A stretch of 64,000 nucleotides of DNA from Octopus sinensis (lineage: Eukaryota). This document shows positions 1,445 to 59,369 of this stretch, one piece after another. A model generated the notes under the pieces. The model searched no databases. It was not told the origin of the DNA and saw only the letters and a list, made by a program, of their open reading frames with translations. The stretch is taken from assembly GCF_006345805.1 (NCBI RefSeq), contig NC_043008.1, positions 32,054,001 to 32,118,000 of the forward strand, given 5' to 3'. The translations under genes and the position numbers were made by a program. Numbering within the stretch: position 1 is the first letter of the stretch; each line of letters begins with the position of its first letter.

Positions 1445-2080
1445 GTGTATGGAGGGGAGAAAATCAAGTGTAGTGTTGGCGAATCTCAGGAAGCATGGAA
1501 GTTTTGAAGGATGCAGTGCTCCGACAACTAACAACCGATGCCGGCAGTTTGTTCCATGCTTCAGCAACTCTCAGCGTAAAAAAATGTTTCCTGAAGTCAT
1601 GGGAGCTGTGCTGTTTTCTTACTTTGTAAATATGTCCACGGGTGTTAGATGGGTGGAGTTTGAAGAGGTGCTCAGAGTTATTGTTTGTGCGATGGTTGAT
1701 AATTTTATGGGTGTCTGCCAAGTCAGCTGCCAGACGTCGGAGTTTCAATGTGTCCATGCCCAGGGAAGTAAGGCGTTCAGGATATGGCAAATGCCTGATG
1801 GAGGGTATTCTTTTGGTTGCACGTCGCTGAACAGCTTCCGGACGATTGATGTCCTGGGCAAGATAGGGGTTCCAGACCGGTGATGCAAATTCCAGGTGAG
1901 GTCTTACCATAGCTATATAAAGCCGCAGATAGATAGCCGGAGAGCGGCTCACAAAGGATTTGGTGAGTGATGCCAAGACACCCTCAGCCTTCTTGACAAT
2001 TTTAGCGATGTGTTTTGTCCAACGCAAATCACTGTCAACAATAACACCCAGGTCACGTTCACATGAAGACTTTTTGAGAC
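1445..2080 (-). mobile_element. CR1/L2-group LINE, 3' part of ORF2 (5'-truncated)
   Basis: ORF 1464-2144 encodes ERDLGV..RPHLEFASPVWNPY..EAVQRRATK..LKLRR..FFTLRVAEAWNKLP, the typical C-terminus of CR1-clade reverse transcriptase. Confidence 0.9.
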
Positions 2081-2427
2081 TAGTGTTGTGGAAAGGAAAC
2101 ATATACTGGATAATGTAGTTCTTAATCTCTTGTACATGAGGCAAAAAGAGAAAGTAGTTGCTTCAGGAACACAGTTGATTCTAAGTCTGCTGGATCACAG
2201 CTGACATACTATCAAACAACAACAAACAACATTTATAACTAACTGCAGAGTGCTAAAAGTGGAAGTCACTGACTTCGGAGTTTGCATGAACAAACCTCAT
2301 CCTACTCATACAAACCTGCTGAAGTGGACATTAAATGTTGATGATTATGATGATGATGATGATTAGGCCCCACCCCCCCAGCTTCCTTATATACACGATA
2401 ATGCTGCCACTCTATCACTTTGCTGCC

Positions 2428-29866: not shown

Positions 29867-29900
29867 ATGGAATCTGACAGGTCATCCCGTGGCATATATG
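29867..29900 (+). CDS. UBAP1: UBAP1 first coding exon (MESDRSSRGIY-G)
   Basis: Strong acceptor ttctttttctccag at 29844, ATG in an aaggATGg context, and donor G|gtcagt. It ends in phase 1, matching the next exon. Sequence conservation here is low, so this exon is less certain than the others. Confidence 0.7.
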
Positions 29901-32299: not shown

Positions 32300-32373
32300 G
32301 TTTGGCTTCTGCTAACTCTGCCCTTGATGGCATCCCTTTTAGAATTGGGACCACTTTTAAAGTGCCCAACAAG
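32300..32373 (+). CDS. UBAP1: UBAP1 exon, UMA domain start (GLASANSALDGIPFRIGTTFKVPNK)
   Basis: tttcag| ... |gtaaat. LDGIPFRIGTTFKVP matches the UBAP1 UMA motif LDDVPFKxGDKFKTP. Confidence 0.93.
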
Positions 32374-33007: not shown

Positions 33008-33064
33008 GTTTCTATTCCTAAGGAACTCCTTCGCCGACGAAATCGTAGTGCCCTTGCTGATGAG
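33008..33064 (+). CDS. UBAP1: UBAP1 exon, UMA domain (VSIPKELLRRRNRSALADE)
   Basis: ttgctag| 57 nt |gttagt, phase 0-0. It bridges FKVPNK to YFFHTEE as in UMA (VGLP...YDFSLE). Confidence 0.85.
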
Positions 33065-34976: not shown

Positions 34977-36122
34977 TATTTCTTTCACACTGAAGAAGGT
35001 GTTATTCTCTGGGCAAAAGCTCAGCAACAGATGAAGAAAAACAGAGAAGCTACCTTGAAAGAATACCATGCTCAGAAAAAGAATGCTCAAAGTCGACTGA
35101 AGAATCCTGTTCCCATGCCTTTAGCATCCGAAGGTGTGTACGTTAATATTCATATGGCCGACAAAATTCTCACACCAACACCAATCAAACCGAGTGTCAA
35201 TGCATTTCACACAGATAACCCAACCAGTAGCACAAAATCACAGATAGATGTCACACAGTTTGAGCAGGAGGATGACCCATTTGAAAATGTTGAGCGACAA
35301 GTAATCAACGAATTTGAAGAACTGAACCAAGTATTTCAGAACTCTGCCGAGTCACTGGAGTCACCAGAAGGGAACTATGAGAATGTTGTTATTAATAAAC
35401 CTCCATTACCATTACCAGATAGCATTGTTGCAGGAACTGATAGTGCATCACCCAATCCTGTTCCTGCATTACAACCAATAACTGCCGAAGAACCTTTGGC
35501 AAACGATGAAGGTTCTACTGTAGAAATTACTAGAAACAAGTCTGAAACAGATTTCCAAGATGGGGAAAACACAGAAAGAAACATTGTTTATGGTAATTTA
35601 CCTTACCGTAAAAAATCCACTTCCAGTTCCCAGAAAAAACGAGAGAGCAATAATTACGTAATGGTCTCTTATGCAAATGGTCGTTTGGTGCATGATGCAA
35701 CAAAATTAACTACAAAACAATTATCATTAGATGAGGAATCAAAACCTAATTTTGTATCTAATTATTTCAACCAGAAGTTCTCTGCCAGTCAGGAGAACAC
35801 TGGGAGTATTCTTGACCCTAATCAACTGAATGAAAGTATTTACGAAAACCTTCCCATTTCTAGCACGGACAATTATGAAAACTGTCTTTTACCACAGAGG
35901 TCGAGACATTCTGTAGCGTTTGATGTTGACACAACTGTTAACCCTCCAGCTATCCCTCCCAGAACAGATTTAACCAAATTGCGTAGTACCCACAGTACAC
36001 CAAATATCCATCAAGCGTCATCTGATAGAGATGCTGAGACTGTTTCCCCCTTCCATTCCCCTTCTAAACCAGCTCCAAGAAAGCAAATTAAGTCTCCAGC
36101 ATCTCCAGTACCGAGGAAACAG
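34977..36122 (+). CDS. UBAP1: UBAP1 large exon (UMA end, acidic DPF motif, disordered linker), 382 codons
   Basis: tttacag| ... AAACAG|gtgagg, within ORF 34965-36290. YFFHTEEGVILWA corresponds to YDFSLEKKTIEWA, and FEQEDDPFENVERQVINEFEEL to [22 protein letters not shown]. Confidence 0.93.
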
Positions 36123-49810: not shown

Positions 49811-49812
49811 TG

Positions 49813-49857
<45 letters not shown>

Positions 49858-50019
49858 AAGTGTGTGTGTGTGTATGTATTTATGTATATATATATATATG
49901 TGTGTATGTATTTATGTGTATATATATATATGTATAAGTATATATATGCATTTATGTATGTATTTATACAGGTATATGTATTTATGTATATACACACACA
50001 TATATATACACATTTTCAG

Positions 50020-52865
50020 GTACATGACACTGCTGTCCCCCATCCCAGGGTCTCATGGGCCTACACCTCCCACACCCTCAGGGTTGGGACACTTAATGTT
50101 GGCACACTGAAAGGTAGGTCTGACGGCGTTGGGGGCATGGGTATACTTCTTGCAGAGAAATGGGTTGATAAGATAATCAAGGTAGTCAGAGTCTGTGATA
50201 GAATACCTAAGATTAGATTAGTGCTGCAAAAGGGGTTAGCAACCATTATCTTGGCCTATGCCCCTCAGCCATGGCTACCTGATGAATAGAAAGATCAATT
50301 TTATGACACCCTCTTGCAGACTACCTTGTTGATGAATGACAGGGACCTTCTCTTTGTGGCTGGTGACTTCAATGGACATGTTGGACATGTCGGGGGCTTC
50401 CATGGCATACATGGAGGCTACGGTTTTGGCTTTCGCAAAGAGGAGGGAATCAGGCTGCTGGCGTTCTGTGATGCAAATGATCTTATGGTTTGCAATACTA
50501 ACTTCAGGAAACCTGCCAGTCACTCATTTACTTACCGATCTGGTAGACACACTAGTCAAATTGACTACATCCTCACCAGGAAGCAGGAAAGATGGCTACT
50601 TATAAATGCCAAACCTTCCCAGGTGAAGAATGCACCCCACAACATAGATTACTTGTTAGCAACTTCAGGATCAGGGATAAATGGATGCCCAGAAGACGAC
50701 CAGCATAGAGTAGAAGGATTTGGAAGCTTAAGGATCCTGCGAATGGACAGAAATTTAGAGGTGTATTACTCAAAGCTTTTGAGGAAATAGGGTTTATAGC
50801 ATCACATGATGTGGAAGACAACTGGAGGTTTCTATGGGACAACTTGTTGAGGGCTACTGACCAGATCTGTGGGTGGTGCAGAGTCCCCTCTTGACCCAAG
50901 GTAACATCATGGTGGAACAATGTAGTTGACAGGGCCATTAGGGAAAAGAAATAGGCATGGAAAGACTGGAAGAACGGTGGTAGCAGGGAATTATATCAGA
51001 TTGCCAGAAGGGAAGCTAGGAGACAGGTTTACTTAGCCAGAGGGGAAGCAGATAAGAAAGAATTTGCCAATGTTCTGTGTTGTGAGGATCAAAGACTTGA
51101 GGTGTTTCGTGTTGCAAGACAGTGTGTGACAGAGAAACATGATGTCATAGGAGAGAGAAATGTGTCTGCATGGATGATGGCTCATTTGCATTTAATGAGG
51201 CTGCAAAGAGAGAGACTTGGCGATGCCACTATGAAAGGTTGCTAAATGAAGAGAATGAATGGGAGAAAGAGAGTCTGCTGAATGTCAATCCAACAGAAGG
51301 ACCAGCTATCCAAATTGACAGTTCCTTGGTAGATAAAGCAATTAAGGATATGAAGACAGGGAAAGCCCCCAACCCATCAGGAATCACCATAGAGATGCTT
51401 AAAATATCTGGCAGTGTCAGCTACAGTCTAGTCACTCATATAGTCAATCAGGTGATACATGGAGTCATGCCAATGAAGGGTGTAGCAGCACCATAGTCGA
51501 CTGCTACAAAGGTAGAGGTGATGCATTAGATACAAATAATTACAGCAGTATCAAGCTATTGGATCTGGTAATGAAAGTCACAGAGATGGTCATGGCCCAA
51601 CTAATTAGAGAAAAAGTCAGTCTAGATGGGATGCAGTTTGGTTTTGTGCCCTGGAAAAGCACTACTGTTGCTTTATTTCTGGTAAGATAGCTGCAGGAGA
51701 AATATCTAGCCAAAGATAAACCTCTGTTCCTAGCTTTTGTTGACATGAAGAAAACCTTTGACAGGGTCCTCTGATCCATTAACTGATGGTTAATGAGGGA
51801 ACTAGGGATAGATGAATGGTTAGTGAGAGCTGTAAAAGCTATGTACAGGGATGCTGTCTGTAATGTAAGGGTTGGCAATGAGTACAATGAAGAATTTTGG
51901 ATAGGGGTCCACCAAGGATCAATCCTCAGCCCACTCTTATTCATCATAGTCCTCCAGGCAATAACAGAGGTATTCAAGACAGGATGCCCTTGGGAGCTTC
52001 TCTATGCTGATGACCTTACTCTAATAGCTGAGTCACTATCAGAACTAGAAGAGAAGTTTCAGGTGTGGAAGCAAAGTCTAGAATCGAAAGGCCTTAGAGT
52101 CAACCTAGCAAAAACCAAAGTCTTAATATGTAGGAAGGCAGACAAACCACAAATCCCTTCAGGTAGATGGCCCTGCTTGATCTGTAGAAACGAAGTAGGT
52201 AGAAACTCCATAAGATGTACCCAGTGTAAGCTATGTACACATAAGAGTTGCAGCAATATCAAAGGAAGGCTAACTTGGAAGATAGTTTTTGTGTGTGCCA
52301 GATGCTCAGGAGCAATAAACACTGAAAATGTGCAGAAAACAGCTTCCATCACATTCCAGGGGGCAAAACTACAAGTAATTGATAGCTCCTATTACCTAGG
52401 TGACCAAGTCAGTAGCAGGGGTGGATGCTCTGAGAGTGTAGCTGCTAGAATAAGAATAGCCTGGGCAAAGTTCAGAGAGCTCTTACCTCTGCTGGTGACA
52501 AAAGGCCTCTCGCTCAGAGTGAAAGGTAGACTGTATGATGCACATGTGCGAACAGCCATGCTACATGGCAGTGAAACATGTGCCGTGACTGCTGAGAACA
52601 TGCGTAAGCTTGCAAGGAATGAAGCCAGTATGCTCCGCTGGATGTGTAATATCAGTGTGCATACACGATGGAGTGTAAGCACCCTGAGAGAAAAGTTGGA
52701 CTTAAGAAGCCTCAGATGTGGTATGCAAAAGAGACGACTACGTTGGTATAGTCATGTGTTGTGAATGGACGAGGACAACTGTGTGAAAAAGTGTCACACC
52801 CTAGCACCTGTGGAAAAGCTAGACTCAGGAAGACATGGGATGAGGTGGTGAAGCACAACCTTTGA
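50020..52865 (+). mobile_element. RTE-clade LINE (APE endonuclease + RT), degenerate, 3'-truncated
   Basis: LRVGTLNVGTLKGR, VAGDFNGHVG, SQIDYIL (APE); KAPNPSGI, QFGF, GVHQGSILSP, LLYADD (RT); MLHGSETC, RRLRWYSHVL (RTE C-terminus). Confidence 0.95.
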
Positions 52866-53011: not shown

Positions 53012-53251
53012 TCTTGGAGTCGGCACTCTCCACTACCACCAATCCGAGCACGGTCCAATGGCCAGGTGTCACAGGGCTCGGTAGACACAAGCTGTAGTGA
53101 TGACAGTCCCACAGATTACACTCAGGCTACTGACCCATTCTCTGCATTGTCACAAGAAGCTCAGACGTTTGCCCAGCAATATCTTTCCATGGGGTTCCCT
53201 CGGGCCAGAGTTGCGAGGGCTGTCCAAAAATTAGGATTACAAGAAAAAGAT
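53012..53251 (+). CDS. UBAP1: UBAP1 exon, first UBA of SOUBA (..QYLSMGFPRARVARAVQKLG..)
   Basis: ctttcag| 240 nt |gtaagt, phase 0-0, containing the MGF UBA loop. Confidence 0.92.
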
Positions 53252-53344
53252 GTAAGTAAAGTCTGTACACAAATTGAAATAATGTGAATGTAAGAAAGAA
53301 CAGGAGCTCCATACCAACATTTTCATGTATTTTGTGTTTTGGAT

Positions 53345-55055
53345 TTATAAAGAGAGAGTTAATTTAGATGAGTTGCAGTTTGGGTTTGTTCCAGAGAGAA
53401 GCACCATTGATGCTATATTTCTGGTAAGACAGTCGCAGGAGAATTTCCTAGCCAAAGATAACCCTCTGTACTTGGCTTTCATTGACATGGGGAAAACCTT
53501 TGACAGGGACCACACCAATCCCTTATCTGGTGGTCAATGTGGAAACTAAGGATAGATGAGTGGTTGGTGAGAGCTATACCAGTGATGTACAAGGATACTG
53601 TCAGTAAGGTGATGGTTGGCAACAAGTATAGTGAAGAATTCCAGGTAAAAGTAGGAGTTCACCAAGGATCAGTCCTCAGCCCCCTCATATTCATCATAGG
53701 TCCTCCAAGCAATAACAGAGGAATTCAAGACAGGTTGTTCCTGCATGCTCCTCTATGCTGATGACCTTGCTCTAATAGCTGAGTCACTACCAGAACTAGA
53801 GAAGAAGTTTCAGGTGTAGGAACAAGGTCTAAGTTGGAAGGCAGACAAATCACAGATCTCTTCAGGTAAACAGCCCTGCTCGATCTGTAGAAAAGGCTTA
53901 AGTAGAAACTCCATAAGATGTACCCAGTGTTAGTTATAGACACTTAAGAGGTGCAGCAATATCAAATGAAGGTTAACTGGGAAGATAGTTTTTGCATGTA
54001 GCAGATGCACAAAGGCAATAAACACTGAAGATGTACAGAAAACAGATTCCATCACATGCCAGGGGTAAAAACTAGAAGTAGATGATAGCTTCCATTACCC
54101 AGGTGACTAAGTCAGTTGCAGGGGTGGATGCTCTGAGAGTGTTGCTGCTAGAATAAGAATAGCCTGAGCAAAGTTCAGAGAGCTCCTACCATTGCTGGTA
54201 ACAAAGTGCCTCTTGCTCAGAGTGAAAAGTAGACTGTATGATGCATGTGTGTGAACAGCCATGCTACACGGCAGTGAAACATGGGCTGTGACTGCTGATA
54301 ACATGCGTAGGCTTGAAAGAAATGAAGCCAGTATGCTCTGCTGGATGTGTAATGTCAGTGTGCATACACAACAGTGTAAGCAACCTGAGAGAAAAGTTGG
54401 ACATAAGAAGTCTCAGATGTGGTGTGCAAGAGAGACAACTGCTCTGGTCTTGTCATGTGTTGCGTATGGATGAGGACAGCTGCATGAAGTGTCACACCCG
54501 AACAGTGGAAGGAACGTGTGGAGGAGGTAGACCCAGGAAGACCTGGGATGAGGTGGTGAAGCACGACCATCGAACATTGGGCCTCACCGAGGCAATGACA
54601 AGTGACCGAGATCTTTGGAGATATGTTGTGCTTGAGAAGATCCTGCAATCCAAGTGAGATTATAGCCGTGGCCAGTGTCAGTGTCGCATAACCGGCCCAT
54701 TTAAAAGCATCTTTCAGGCATCAGGCAATATGCAGTGCTTGAGAAGACCTGTTGAGTCAAGTGAAATCGTAATCATGGCTGATGCCAGTGTCACTTGACT
54801 GGCACCCATGCCGGTGGCATGTAAAAAGCACCATTCAAGCGTGGTTGATGCCAGTGCCAGCTGACTGGCTCCCATGCTGGTAGAATGTAAAAAGCACCTG
54901 CTACACTCTTGGAGTGGTTGATGTTAAGAAGGGCATCAAGCTGTAGAAACCTTGGCAGATCAGATTGGAACCTGGGTCAGCCTCCTGACTTGCCAGTCCT
55001 CAGTCAAACTGTCCAACCCATGCCAGCACAGAAAGCAGATGTTAAACATGATGAT
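53345..55055 (+). mobile_element. second RTE LINE copy, 5'-truncated, with 3' UTR and (ATG)n tail
   Basis: QFGFVPERST, GVHQGSVLSP, YADD, MLHGSETW, GRPRKTWDEVV, stop at about 54657; then UTR subrepeats and a tail ending gttaaacatgatgat. Confidence 0.93.
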
Positions 55056-55709
55056 CTTTTTATATGTGAGTGCATTTGTTAGCTCATGTATGTATGACTT
55101 GAGAATTATCAAGTTCAGTACCTGCAGTGGCCTATAGTTTCGTCATGGTTCAGATATTTTCAGGCCAGTAAGGATTGAGGAATGTTGTAGGGCTTGAATT
55201 TGTTTGGGTTGTGGATTGTAAATTTGATGGTTTTTTCTCTTTTGTTGCCATAGAGGTGACTGCAGAAAGGTTTGTGAGGAAATCTGCTGACAATCTCATG
55301 AAATGTTTCTCAGAACTCTTAAGGTATTTCAGAAACAGCTGAGAAGAGTTCCAATTGGATCTGGCCAAGTTACAATGCATACAGTTACACAGTATTTGGT
55401 AGCAGAGGGATATCTAGGAGTCATCACCTGGACATGACCTAGCCCCTTTAGAGTGTAAAGAGTTAAGGGCCAAAACACTTGCCTGAGGGGGGGTCCTTTT
55501 TCTCTGAAGATCTGCTGTTCAGCTCTCCCTAAAGTTTCTCACTAACTTTGTTTTCATTTCTTTCTTAATAGTAATTGTATGCAGTATATACCCTAATTTG
55601 AGCAGATGTGCGTAATGTTAGTAGTAATAGTTGTAGAACAGTATAAATGCAGTAGATGTTTTCTAATATTGATGCTAATGACTTCAGTGTTGAATGTTTT
55701 TTTTTTCAG

Positions 55710-55811
55710 GTGATTGATCATCTGTGTATGGTTGACAAACTGGGAGAAGGAGGATATGATCCACACTTGGTTGAAGATGCTTTACATTTATTTGAAAATG
55801 ATATCCAAAAA
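55710..55811 (+). CDS. UBAP1: UBAP1 exon, second UBA (VIDHLCMVDKLGEGGYDPHLVEDALHLFENDIQK)
   Basis: ttttttcag| 102 nt |gtaaga, phase 0-0, with a GYDP..VEDAL SOUBA pattern. Confidence 0.92.
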
Positions 55812-55942
55812 GTAAGACATGCAAATCATTTCATTAAATCTTGGTCATTTATTGTAGTTCTTAATCAGCTATTGATGGCTCTTTGTCATCTGTCATTAGT
55901 CTTGATCATGCAATGTGATTTTCATAACTGCACAGTTATATG

Positions 55943-57167
55943 GGATAGGGGACTGAAAAGTTCAAAGGCTGGCTATGAAGGAGTGATACTAGAGCTGTGA
56001 AATCTTGTATGCATTAATTTCAGCTCTTCTTAATAATTGCATTGTTTCTTTCCAGGTAAACTAACATCTGACTGTTCAAAAGTAACTAGTTGTGACTTTT
56101 CTTGAAAATCAACAAAATTTAGTATTGTCATGTTATCAAGTACCTGCAGAAAAAAGGTTTAGCCCCCAAGGACATTCATGCTGACATGATTGCTATATTA
56201 AGGGATGATGCTGCAGCTTTATCAACAGTGCGAAAGTGGGCTAGGGAATTTAGGAGGAGAAGGGAGAGTCTTGAAGATGACCCAGCATTTGGATGTCCTC
56301 CAACTGTCACCACCAAGGAAAACATTTATCCTTCTCACCACATGGTGATGGATGATGGGCAATTGACTATAAATCAAAACGCCAATGTTATTAGCATATC
56401 CCATGAGTGAGTTGTGAATATTCAGCACAATGTACTTAGCATGAAGAAGATTTCTGCTTGGTGGGTGCTACATCTTCTAATGCCTGATCAAAATCACATC
56501 AGGCTGATCACATCATGGAAAATCTGACATTAATTGAGGCAGATCCAGCTGGTTTCCTTGAATGTTTCCTAACCTAGGATGGGTGTTGGATTGATCACTT
56601 TGAACCAGAGATAAAGAGATAATCCATGCAGTGGAAACACCTGCTCTAAAGAGGTCCAAGGTTATTTCATCTACATGATGGCCTCAGGTATTTTGGGATG
56701 CAAAAGACATTGTGTTTATTGACCATCACTTGAAAGTACTATGCCAACTTGCTGAGACAGTTATGAAAGGCTATCAAGACCTGGTGCCCAGTAAGACTGA
56801 CAAAAGTTGTCTTGTTTCATCAGGACAATGCTCCAGCATGCAAGTCTTTGGTTTCAGTGGCTGCTGTGTGTAACTGTGACTTTGAACTGGTTGATCATCC
56901 TCCCTATTGTCTTGATTTGGCCTCGTCTGACTATCATCTGTTTTCCAACATGAAAAACCACTTGACTGGGAACCAGAATCGCAGTGATGATGTCATATCT
57001 GCTGTTGATGACTTGTTTGACCAGCAGGTTGAAAGCTTCTTCAGCAATGGGATCCAAACACTGCTACACCCATGGAAGAAGTGTGTGAACAACAAGAAGA
57101 ACTATGTTGAAAATTAAATCTCATTTGGTCACATTCCTGAGAGTATGACCTTTTCAGCCAACCCTTG
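55943..57167 (+). mobile_element. mariner (DD34D, irritans/Himar-like), degenerate
   Basis: TIR cores gactgaaaagttca / tgaccttttcagcc; the right end is ttg|TA. STVRKWAREF..EDDP, HQDNAPA..HPPYCLDLASSD with 34-residue spacing. Confidence 0.9.
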
Positions 57168-57199
57168 TACTTGCATGTATGTAATTAGTACTGTCTGTA

Positions 57200-57420
57200 A
57201 TTCTTTAGCATTAAGATTTCTTTTTCAAGTGTATTGCTTATTTATTTACATTGTTTTGAATTAATCATGTATTATCACATAGCTTCAGGATTTCAACAGA
57301 GTGTTTGTATATTTTAAGAATGACATTGTCCGGTAGGTGTAAGAGGTTGGTTCTGATCTGTTTTAACATTAAACAAGTAGAATATTTGGGCTGGATATAC
57401 TCAGATTAAATGCTAAAGGG
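57200..57420 (-). mobile_element. piggyBac-type MITE (reverse orientation)
   Basis: Ends aaatgctaaaggg|TTAA; the body is the reverse complement of 24085-24312. Confidence 0.7.
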
Positions 57421-57674
57421 TTAATGATATTCAAAATAGAAAGAGCATACCCCCCCCACCCAAATAAAAAGTAATAATTTATATGATTTTAGTTGTTAGT
57501 TTAATTGAAAGTATAAAATTATGCAGTACATATTTCATAGAATGTCAGCACTATGTTCTGTCAGATCCACCTCCTTCACAAGGCTCATGCTCCACCAATT
57601 TCATATTTCTGATTCCTTCTCCTGTACCTCCACTGGCATCGTTTTATTGTCTTAACCCATTAAGTCCCACTTTT

Positions 57675-57812
57675 AAATTTAAATTTTTTTTTTTACCAAA
57701 AAGTATAAAAAGAATGATAAATATAGTATAATAAGTAAATATAATATATACTTATTATATTATATTTATCATTCTTTTTATACTTTTTGGTAAATAAAAA
57801 AAATTTAAATTT
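57675..57812. repeat. palindromic AT-rich repeat
   Basis: 57695-57737 pairs with 57749-57791 (43 bp, one G-T); pairing extends imperfectly outward. Confidence 0.9.
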
Positions 57813-57974
57813 TAGATTTTATAATATATATATATATATATATATTATATATTATATTAATTATATTTATATTATCTGTTTAGTTATGTATTGGTTTATG
57901 TCTATCACTGTTTGAGTTGCCTAATAGTGGTTTTATCTCTAATTCATATTTTATATATATATATATATATCTAT

Positions 57975-58945
57975 CATCATCATCATCATCATCATCATTT
58001 AACATCCGCTTTCCATGCTAGCATGGGTTGGACGGTTCAACTGAGGTCTGGGGAGCCCGAAGGCTGCACCAGGCCAATCAGATCTGGCAGTGTTTCTACA
58101 GCTGGATGCCCTTCCTAACGCCAACCACTCCGAGAGTGTAGTGGGTGATTTTATGTGCCACCGACACAGGTGCCAGACGAGGCTGGCGAACGGCCACGCT
58201 CGGATGGTGTTTTTTATGTGCCACCGACACAGGTGCCAGACGAGGCTGGCAGACGGCCACGCTCGGATGGTGTTTTTATGTGCCACCGACACAAGTGCCA
58301 GATGAGGCTGGCAAACGGCCACGATCGGATGGTGTTTGTTACGTGCCCACAGCACGGAGGCCAGTCGATGCGGTACTGGCTACGGCCACGTTCGGATGGT
58401 TTTCTTGTGTGCCACCGGCACTGGTACCACAAAGATACAAATTCCATTGATGTTCATCTATTTTGATTTTTTTGATTTTCACTTGCCTCAACAGGTCTTC
58501 ACAAGTGTCACACACTTGCCTCAACAGGTCTTCACAAGTGTCATAAGAAGGAAGGTATGCACAGGTGGACTGACTACGTCCCAGGTAGGGGCCACGGGTT
58601 ATGGCCTGACTACGTCCCAGGTAGGGGCCACGGGTTATGGCCTGACTACGTCCCAGGTAGGGGCCACGGGTTATGGCCTGACTACGTCCCAGGTAGGGAC
58701 CACGGGTTATGGCCTGACTAGTCTTGCCGGGTCTTCGGATGGTTTTTATGTGCCACCGACACAGGTGCCAGATGAGGCTGGCGAACGGCCACGATCGGAT
58801 GGTGTTTGTTACGTGCCCACAGCACGGAGGCCAGTCGATGTGGTACTGACTACCGCCACGTTCGGATGGTTTTCTTGTGTGCCACCGGCACTGGTACCAC
58901 AAAGATACAAATTCCATTGATGTTCATCTATTTTTGATTTGTTTT
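57975..58945 (-). mobile_element. RTE 3' end with expanded internal minisatellites and an internal duplication
   Basis: Tail at 57975-58150; five 62-66-bp units from 58152; a 31-bp doublet at 58480/58513; four 36-bp units at 58570-58713; 58747-58940 duplicates 58277-58470. Confidence 0.85.
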
Positions 58946-59243
58946 GATTTGATTATATATATATATATATATTATCAATCTAACATATATCAGGAAAAGA
59001 AGCTCACTCTAAAAAATAGAGCAGTAAGTATTAAAACAAGAAGTTAAATTCTGGTCATAGAGTGACCATTGGTTTCGTATCCACAAAAGCTGCAACCTTG
59101 TGAACAGCTCACCAGACTCTATAGAGTTCAACTTTTTATTTTAATATATACAAATACACACACTCATCTATTTATATGTATTTCAAGTTTATATACACAC
59201 ATCAACAAACATAACCTTTTGCCTTTTTTTTTTGTTTTTTCAG

Positions 59244-59369
59244 GCGGAATGCTACTTGCACCTTCATCAACAATTTGTGGAACTTGGATTTCAAAAACCA
59301 AAGATCCAGCATGCATTAGTTACTTCCAAGCTCGACAGTGACAAAGCTTTGGACTTGTTAACCACCTAA
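59244..59369 (+). CDS. UBAP1: UBAP1 last coding exon, third UBA (AECYL..FVELGFQKPKIQHALVTSKLDSDKALDLLTT*)
   Basis: ttttttcag|, phase 0. The LGF..I..AL...D.DKAL..L UBA pattern ends at TAA 59367-59369. ATTAAA at 59570 is a possible polyA signal. Confidence 0.92.
   Translation, partial: AECYLHLHQQFVELGFQKPKIQHALVTSKLDSDKALDLLTT

Follow-up and report, generated by a model that had tools for sequence, protein, structure and literature searches.

A conserved array of Y-x-N motifs in the linker of octopus UBAP1 as a possible phosphotyrosine-dependent docking site

A 64,000-nucleotide stretch of the Octopus sinensis genome (RefSeq assembly GCF_006345805.1, contig NC_043008.1, positions 32,054,001 to 32,118,000 of the forward strand; hereafter the window) contains a gene for UBAP1, a subunit of the endosomal sorting complex required for transport I (ESCRT-I), and the large fourth coding exon of this gene encodes seven tyrosines in the arrangement Y-x-N (Table 1). 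Is this array more than an accident of composition, how widely is it shared, where did it come from, and what might it do for an endosomal sorting complex? A first-pass annotation, made from the sequence alone, had proposed that this lineage fused a Gab/IRS-like docking scaffold into ESCRT-I and thereby coupled tyrosine-kinase signalling directly to receptor sorting. Here we describe an array that exceeds chance expectation and is conserved between octopods and decapodiforms, that is older than the cephalopods, and that may serve as a multisite docking platform for Grb2-type adaptors.

The exon 4 product has 11 tyrosines and 33 asparagines among its 382 residues, and 7 of the tyrosines are followed by asparagine at the +2 position. 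These counts and all seven motif start coordinates agree exactly with the first-pass annotation. From the composition of exon 4 only about 0.95 Y-x-N motifs would be expected, in line with the value of roughly one estimated previously, and seven or more motifs appeared in just 3 of 200,000 composition-preserving shuffles of the exon 4 product (P of roughly 1.5e-5). Because the pattern had been picked after viewing the sequence, we used a second test, which put no restriction on the residue or on its offset between -3 and +3 and gave a P value of about 3e-4. The excess is thus real. Exon 4 contains no DNA direct repeats and therefore the motifs are not recent duplicates; recent internal duplication was rejected as their source.

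Conservation within cephalopods was assessed by using an alignment of four full-length proteins, from Octopus, Argonauta, Acanthosepion and a second decapodiform. The tyrosine and the asparagine at +2 are invariant at 13 of the 14 motif positions, as compared with 51% of linker columns (hypergeometric P of roughly 9e-4). Six of the seven YxN motifs are unchanged between octopods and decapodiforms; conservation of the linker elsewhere is about 50%. Thus, the YxN islands within a divergent linker for which the first-pass annotation had suggested a search are present in these four proteins. Variation within the motifs falls at +1 (V/A) and +3 (L/V/M), where the changes are conservative. Such a pattern, in which Y and N are fixed and the +1 and +3 positions are free to vary, is by sequence the signature expected of a Y-x-N motif.

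Two of the sites, IVYGNL and SIYENL, had also been said to fit the consensus of immunoreceptor tyrosine-based inhibitory motifs (ITIMs), [S/I/V/L]-x-Y-x-x-[I/V/L], which lie in the cytoplasmic tails of transmembrane receptors. Both indeed fit in Octopus, but the decapodiform counterparts (AIYGNL and GIYENM) fail to do so at positions -2 and +3. Because the -2 residue is A or G in decapodiforms, the ITIM fit is incidental, and we rejected this reading on conservation. The fit is limited to octopods, and reading of the sequence reveals no transmembrane segment in what is a soluble ESCRT subunit.

To see how far the array extends, we searched 1.84 billion representative proteins with a profile and obtained 442 relatives. 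YxN motifs were counted in the best 150 of these, of which 30 were identified by name; unnamed ones were placed by BLAST. A further search, with a profile built from 23 sequences, yielded only nine proteins, all of them already known, and the comparison set is without an identified annelid, polyplacophoran or Nautilus UBAP1. Arrays are present in bivalves (5–6 motifs per protein in Crassostrea, 5 in Saccostrea, 6 in Mya, 3 in Sinanodonta, 3 in Tegillarca and 5–6 in three further bivalve-like sequences) and in some gastropods (4 in Patella, 6 in Littorina, 7 in a Littorina-like sequence and 3 in Batillaria). Other gastropods are without arrays, having either no motif (Haliotis, Gigantopelta, Aplysia and Lymnaea) or one (Babylonia).

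Outside the molluscs, Lingula, Tubulanus and Priapulus have no YxN and Lineus has one. The horseshoe crab Tachypleus has two, one of which reads LEYENV, and the tunicates Styela and Clavelina have two each (YENV, YVNI and YVNV are represented). These single canonical motifs in the horseshoe crab and the two tunicates may be ancestral remnants or the result of convergence. No YxN at all is present in four full-length sequences of vertebrate type (SLSFPKL in three of them, SLTFPKL in the fourth), in agreement with the first pass, in which no such array was known from vertebrate UBAP1. Pooled by group, the motifs exceed expectation 7.8-fold in cephalopods (26 observed versus 3.3 expected), 4.5-fold in bivalves (38 versus 8.4) and 2.6-fold in gastropods (29 versus 11.1), as compared with 1.3-fold (122 versus 93.6) in 108 homologues of similar composition from outside the molluscs. 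We regard the bivalve excess as an independent replication of a hypothesis that was framed on the octopus sequence.

Several of these motifs occupy equivalent sites. A MAFFT alignment of 13 mollusc sequences reveals at least three motif positions that are shared among cephalopods, bivalves and gastropods. Octopus EGNYENVV (Y189) aligns with GVYENT in oyster and VTYENT in Tegillarca, IVYGNL (Y260) aligns with PIYGNV in Littorina, and SIYENLP (Y344) aligns with YENV, YENT, YENI or YSNL in bivalves and gastropods. Bivalves also carry [AN]YVN[VM] upstream of a box reading LRxxxSxPD, comparable to octopus NYENC. The remaining motifs differ in position among molluscs, as is usual for short linear motifs. 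Because bivalves and some gastropods share aligned motif positions, the array predates cephalopods and is ancestral to at least the conchiferan molluscs; its age is bounded as at least that of the ancestor which cephalopods, bivalves and gastropods share. It was lost repeatedly in gastropods. The earlier attribution of the array to the cephalopod lineage alone therefore does not hold.

A different tripeptide is found in some of the gastropods concerned. The linkers of three heterobranchs that lack typical YxN[VILM] motifs, Aplysia (P0017), Lymnaea (P0014) and Bradybaena (P0013, which has three atypical YxN), carry two to three copies each of NPF, the type of ligand recognized by EH domains (Eps15 and intersectin). 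NPF is also recorded for Sinanodonta (P0027) and Styela (P0095), and there is none in the octopus linker. UBAP1 linkers may swap motif sets between lineages.

The sequence character of the motifs is informative about their possible partners. Among 90 mollusc YxN motifs, 40 have I, V or L at -1 and 15 have N there, and E is frequent at -3. At +1, E leads with 37, followed in frequency by S, V, A and G; 51 motifs carry V, L, I or M at +3, and P is common at +4. The resulting consensus is [I/V/L/N]-Y-[E/V/S/G/A]-N-[V/L/I/M]. Tyrosine is the most enriched residue two positions before asparagine (4.4-fold), and asparagine occupies +2 for 54% of the 117 linker tyrosines of array-bearing molluscs. 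An I, V or L at -1 combined with E or G at +1 suits Src-type kinases, and YVNI, YENV, YENL and YVNV match documented Grb2 sites in vertebrates. The sequence pY-X-N-X is specifically recognized by the Grb2 SH2 domain (PMC3787023), and the match to the Grb2-family SH2 consensus claimed in the first pass is thus upheld at the level of the motif.

Proline-rich segments occur in the same exon. PPAIPPR matches the class II (PxxPxR) consensus and is predicted to be a conserved SH3 ligand. The ligand PAIPPR had been reported previously and is indeed present, although its coordinates are 35946–35963, one base off the 35947–35964 originally given. Oysters, Mya and two further bivalve-like sequences carry PPVPPR(R/P), there is none in Sinanodonta or Tegillarca, and vertebrate-type UBAP1 has no PPxPPR. 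The cephalopod PPAIPPR and the bivalve PPVPPR fall in different MAFFT columns and may be either homologous or convergent. In SOS, the sites that bind Grb2 have PPVPPR as their core. Proline motif and array tend to occur together, as seven of the nine proteins bearing PP[VAIL]I?PPR have at least three YxN, a count that is uncorrected for phylogeny.

A doubled PxxPxPRKQ had likewise been noted in the first pass; both copies are present, but the doubling is confined to octopods, and decapodiforms have a single copy. In octopus the doubled segment runs on as SWSRHSPLPP in exon 5, and PxPRKQ is homologous to PPPRPSSxQSWNRYSPLP, which is widespread in other invertebrates. Elsewhere in the linker, at octopus residues of roughly 196–215, the stretch PPLPLP is expanded to PPPLPPPPLPPPP in decapodiforms (P0003, P0004 and P0005), where it is followed by a poly-alanine run of about ten residues that is absent in octopods.

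The identity of the gene and the ordinary character of its linker bear directly on the origin of the array. The seven coding exons, joined at GT-AG junctions, yield exactly the 592-residue predicted Octopus vulgaris protein P0001 (100% identity). Exon 4 extends from an TTTTACAG acceptor to a CAG/GTGAGG donor and comprises 1146 nucleotides, or 382 codons, with no stop. Residues 489–590, which make up roughly the C-terminal 100, match the human UBAP1 SOUBA structure 4AE4 (E = 4.7e-10), and AlphaFold2 models seven helices across residues 485–591, with ten-residue block means of the predicted local distance difference test (pLDDT) score of at least 90 from residue 481. The family PF21267 is given for P0001 in precomputed annotation and was not recovered in our own Pfam scan at E <= 0.01. 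At the other end of the protein, the UMA region (residues ~15–70) aligns with named UBAP1 proteins; in 23 diverse members E61 and V64 never vary, and D21, G22, P24 and Y56 hardly do. The oyster orthologue has a weak match, below the cutoff (E = 0.002), to the C-terminal, UMA-containing part of the MVB12 Pfam model. Relatives are named 'ubiquitin-associated protein 1' by their source in other molluscs, a brachiopod, nemerteans, a priapulid, a horseshoe crab and the tunicate Clavelina; the record of the tunicate Styela bears a different name. Because of these named relatives and the C-terminal match to 4AE4, we assign the gene as the octopus UBAP1 orthologue, in agreement with the first-pass annotation. 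AlphaFold2 pLDDT values fall below 50 over residues 98–144 and 181–475, and so the linker is predicted to be disordered and the YxN motifs to lie within this disorder.

The linker segment that is best conserved among animals lies outside the array. This block, FEQEDDPFENVERQVINEFEELNQVFQ, has five residues (F150, E151, F157, E170 and L171) that are invariant in the 23 diverse UBAP1 proteins. It starts with DPF, reading DPF-E-N-V-E, and is modelled as a helix spanning residues 156–180 with block-mean pLDDT values of ~61–78, moderately confident over DPFENVERQVINEFEELNQVFQ. The literature consulted for UBAP1 assigns no function to it. A second landmark concerns the binding of HD-PTP, for which the human UBAP1 residues are I263, L266, F268, P269 and L271 (PMC5145805). 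A regular-expression scan, as distinct from an alignment, points to octopus LRSTHSTPNI as a candidate positional equivalent of the vertebrate HD-PTP-binding box, I(K/R)SLSFPKL. The pattern [LIM]-R-x3-S-[TNS]-P-[DN]-[IL] occurs in most of the invertebrate UBAP1 proteins examined (including P0031, P0030, P0028 and P0040), with Lingula lacking it, and also matches three of the four vertebrate-type sequences at the FPKL box. In this candidate box, the essential human Phe268 is replaced by Thr in octopus and by Thr, Asn or Ser in invertebrates. Exon 4 shows the UBAP1 landmarks in their ordinary order, namely the last part of the UMA region, LTPTPI, the helix of the DPF block, the LRxxxSxP box and PPPRP-QSW. 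Nothing was fused, and the YxN sites are short linear motifs that originated and turned over within the linker itself.

Table 1 Features of the octopus UBAP1 gene, with positions in the window
Feature	Position	Strand	Remarks
UBAP1, coding part	29867-59369	+	seven coding exons
UBAP1 coding exons	29867-29900, 32300-32373, 33008-33064, 34977-36122, 53012-53251, 55710-55811, 59244-59369	+	GT-AG junctions
Large exon 4	34977-36122	+	residues 56-437; end of UMA region and almost the whole linker
YVNI (Y110)	35139-35150	+	Y and N invariant in four cephalopods; +1 is V/A
FEQEDDPFENVERQVINEFEELNQVFQ	35259-35339	+	pan-metazoan conserved UBAP1 linker block; outside the YxN array
YENV (Y189)	35376-35387	+	just after the conserved helix; EGNYENVV invariant in cephalopods
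PPLPLP, proline-rich stretch	35400-35417	+	conserved in cephalopods; PPPLPPPPLPPPP in decapodiforms
YGNL (Y260)	35589-35600	+	context IVYGNLP; Y, G, N and P invariant in cephalopods
YANG (Y287)	35670-35681	+	in invariant island NNYVMVSYANGRLV; conserved in cephalopods
YFNQ (Y318)	35763-35774	+	YxN in octopods only; SLNQ or SINQ in decapodiforms
YENL (Y344)	35841-35852	+	context SIYENLP; Y, E, N and P invariant in cephalopods
YENC (Y355)	35874-35885	+	NYENC invariant in cephalopods
PPAIPPR	35943-35963	+	class II (PxxPxR) SH3-ligand consensus; invariant in five cephalopod sequences except for one A/V change
LRSTHSTPNI	35979-36008	+	candidate counterpart of the vertebrate HD-PTP-binding box; pattern scan
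PAPRKQ...PVPRKQ doubling	36069-36122	+	octopod-specific; PAPRKQ 36069-36086, PVPRKQ 36105-36122
Exons 5-7	53012-59369	+	end of linker and C-terminal SOUBA (triple UBA) domain

The introns of the gene hold repetitive DNA. Fragments of a non-long-terminal-repeat retrotransposon lie in intron 4 at 50314–52764 (+), and also at 1464–2144 (-) in the window. The open reading frame at 51793–52764 (+) encodes a reverse-transcriptase domain (RVT_1, E = 3.8e-14); those at 50314–50790 and 1464–2144 are retroelement-like by eye and have no Pfam match. A simple repeat rich in TG/TA (49811–50007) lies just upstream of the intron 4 fragments. Intron 6 contains two tandem-repeat arrays at 58149–58720, one with a 63-bp unit present 4.4 times and the other with a 36-bp unit present 4.3 times at 98% identity, and these create long spurious open reading frames on both strands.

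What might the array do? We favour the view, tentatively and at slightly less than an even chance, that it is a multisite, phosphorylation-dependent docking array for Grb2/Drk-type SH2 domains that arose in place in the ESCRT-I linker. If this model is correct, Src-family or receptor tyrosine kinases on endosomes would phosphorylate the linker YxN tyrosines, and each pY-x-N would dock the SH2 domain of a Grb2/Drk adaptor. The neighbouring PPAIPPR (PPVPPR in bivalves) could bind an SH3 domain, either of that adaptor or of another one. Active receptor-Grb2(-Cbl) complexes would then be tethered multivalently to ESCRT-I, and kinase activity would gate ubiquitin-dependent sorting. Our analysis establishes that the motifs exist, that they exceed chance, that they are selectively conserved, how they are distributed among taxa and that the sequence around them is predicted to be disordered; that they are phosphorylated, which SH2 domain would read them and how sorting would respond are inferences from sequence. 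Transcripts of Grb2 and SOS are present in a bivalve (PMC13198591).

A number of observations weigh against this docking model. The array has been lost entirely in many gastropods (Haliotis, Aplysia, Lymnaea and Gigantopelta), and so core ESCRT-I function can evidently dispense with it. The invariant island NNYVMVSYANGRLV, which carries YANG, is modelled by AlphaFold2 as a low-confidence beta-hairpin (strands 286–288 and 291–293 with an N-G turn), and this site may be structural rather than a docking site. The group P values and the association with PPVPPR ignore shared ancestry. Our literature search returned nothing on UBAP1 with Grb2, SH2 domains, phosphotyrosine or molluscs, and no phosphotyrosine proteome from a mollusc such as oyster was found. 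The residues that follow the tyrosines, and minor hints concerning the segment E-N-V, also count on this side and lead to the main competing explanation.

In that explanation the sites are short linear motifs that work without phosphorylation, by binding a trafficking partner such as an adaptor mu-subunit (YxxPhi), Atg8/LC3 (through sequences like the LC3-interacting region (LIR), [W/F/Y]xx[L/I/V] after acidic residues) or the partner of the DPF-E-N-V-E block. We consider it unlikely, if well worth weighing. About 56% of linker tyrosines have a hydrophobic residue (V, I, L, M or F) at +3 and E is common at -3, and thus YxxPhi or LIR-type motifs also fit. The asparagine at +2 is nevertheless the most constrained position, and it is needed for neither YxxPhi nor LIR recognition; moreover, roughly 43% of the 90 mollusc motifs lack V, L, I or M at +3 (for example YANG, YFNQ, YENC, YENT and YSNS). 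The start of the helix block, DPFENVE, resembles xYENVE(L) of bivalves. Because Tubulanus has three x-E-N-V segments without tyrosine (HENV, DENV and NENV) and the conserved block has its own E-N-V, there are hints that E-N-V matters without phosphotyrosine, and Lingula likewise has GENVE. Yet the Tubulanus excess is marginal (P of about 0.03 before correction over ~130 proteins). Of the 96 EN[VILM] occurrences in the family, 31 follow a Y and 12 follow an F, and several of the latter belong to the conserved DPFEN block. The cephalopod alignment contains no orthologous exchange of Y to F. Furthermore, YxxPhi signals act on membrane cargo, which UBAP1 is not.

It is improbable, in our estimate, that the tyrosines are phosphorylated and mainly read by something other than Grb2, such as SHP2/Csw, Src-family or Grb7/10/14-type proteins or the weakly active phosphatase domain of HD-PTP/Myopic, with the array regulating how HD-PTP and UBAP1 interact. 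The octopod ITIM/SHP2-like contexts would suit such a reader, although decapodiforms do not conserve them. A preference for pYxN is also shown by SH2 domains of the Grb7 family. YENL and YENC lie 35–55 residues upstream of LRSTHSTPNI, the candidate HD-PTP box (PMC5145805). Against these points, the only feature common to all motifs is the asparagine at +2, the hallmark of Grb2-family selectivity (PMC3787023). We strongly disfavour the notion that the array has no function and is a by-product of composition, chance or neutral drift. The low-complexity linker abounds in N, S, E and P, the gene persists without the motifs in several gastropod lineages, and the pattern was chosen with the sequence in view; but both shuffle tests argue otherwise, the motif residues stay invariant across the octopod-decapodiform split while their flanks diverge, and the excess recurs in bivalves far above its level in non-mollusc homologues. 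Least credible of all, to a degree that we regard as close to negligible, is the cephalopod-specific fusion of a Gab/IRS-like scaffold that the first-pass annotation had put forward. The array is indeed richest in cephalopods (6–7 motifs), but bivalves and some gastropods share it at aligned positions, the protein contains one YxxM and no PH or PTB domain, and exon 4 is collinear with an ordinary UBAP1 linker. The fusion is thus refuted with regard to origin and lineage, and its functional half survives within the Grb2/Drk docking model.

Should the Grb2/Drk docking model hold, its interest would lie in the step at which it acts. ESCRT-I complexes containing UBAP1 commit ubiquitinated growth-factor receptors to degradation, and the array would be a direct, phosphorylation-dependent bridge from an active receptor complex to the sorting machinery. 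Vertebrates make this link only indirectly, through Cbl-mediated ubiquitination, the contact between HD-PTP and Grb2, and phosphorylation of MVB12A. Molluscs offer a natural experiment, with the array in cephalopods, bivalves, Patella and Littorina and none in Haliotis, Aplysia or Lymnaea. The array also illustrates gain and loss of short motifs in the disordered linkers of ESCRT subunits. A bolder version, which we mention as a speculation with little chance of being right, is that tyrosine kinases gate mollusc ESCRT-I directly. Once phosphorylated, the four to seven YxN of UBAP1, together with its SOS-type PPVPPR or PPAIPPR, would nucleate a multivalent, Grb2-dependent assembly on endosomes, resembling LAT-Grb2-SOS clusters, that gathers ESCRT-I at active receptors. 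In vertebrates this wiring would have disappeared, its place being taken by Grb2 binding to HD-PTP and tyrosine phosphorylation of MVB12A/B.

Several known systems are close to the octopus protein. Vertebrate UBAP1 is its orthologue and shares the UMA region, the DPF-helix block, the SOUBA domain and a long disordered linker for which one large exon supplies most of the coding sequence. The vertebrate-type proteins differ in having no YxN and no PPxPPR, as against seven YxN in octopus, and the candidate octopus HD-PTP box has Thr at the position of human Phe268 (PMC5145805). Scaffolds with multiple YxN sites (LAT, NTAL/LAB, FRS2, Shc and SIT) likewise carry several pY-x-N-type motifs in disordered regions, often with hydrophobic residues at -1 and +3. 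Multivalent YxN sites combined with proline-rich SH3 ligands are the principle of LAT-Grb2-SOS clustering. In contrast to LAT-, NTAL- or FRS2-type scaffolds, octopus UBAP1 is not anchored by a transmembrane segment or a lipid and lacks both PTB and PH domains, and it is an ESCRT-I subunit with ubiquitin-binding domains. Pfam scans of exon 4 and of the full protein found no PH or PTB domain, and the N terminus is the UMA region. A weak, sub-threshold match of exon 4 to the Pfam family SIT over IVYGNLPY (E = 0.2) is far below what membership would require, and we rejected it as more than a resemblance between motifs. Membership of the Gab/IRS/Dos group, in which an N-terminal PH domain (joined by PTB in IRS) directs the scaffold to membrane or receptor and several YxxM (PI3K) and SHP2 sites accompany the Grb2 sites, was rejected as well, given the missing PH and PTB domains, the single YxxM (YVMV) and the unconserved ITIM/SHP2-type context. 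The array may thus work like a LAT-, NTAL- or FRS2-type scaffold while belonging to neither those families nor Gab/IRS.

Precedents come from two routes in the same pathway. MVB12A/CFBP and MVB12B occupy the same ESCRT-I slot, have a UMA domain and are tyrosine-phosphorylated on EGFR activation, with changes recorded for both, and MVB12A binds the SH3 adaptors CIN85/CD2AP (PMC4007767, PMC2881412). These subunits differ from UBAP1 in having a MABP domain and no SOUBA, and they have one or a few reported phosphosites and no reported YxN array. HD-PTP (PTPN23), the partner of UBAP1, binds Grb2 and GrpL via its proline-rich region, so that in human cells Grb2-family adaptors are physically connected with the sorting step served by HD-PTP and UBAP1 (PMC3002266). 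There the adaptor SH3 domain contacts the proline-rich region of HD-PTP, whereas the contacts proposed for molluscs would be made on UBAP1 itself, with SH2 domains binding pYxN and SH3 domains binding PxxPxR.

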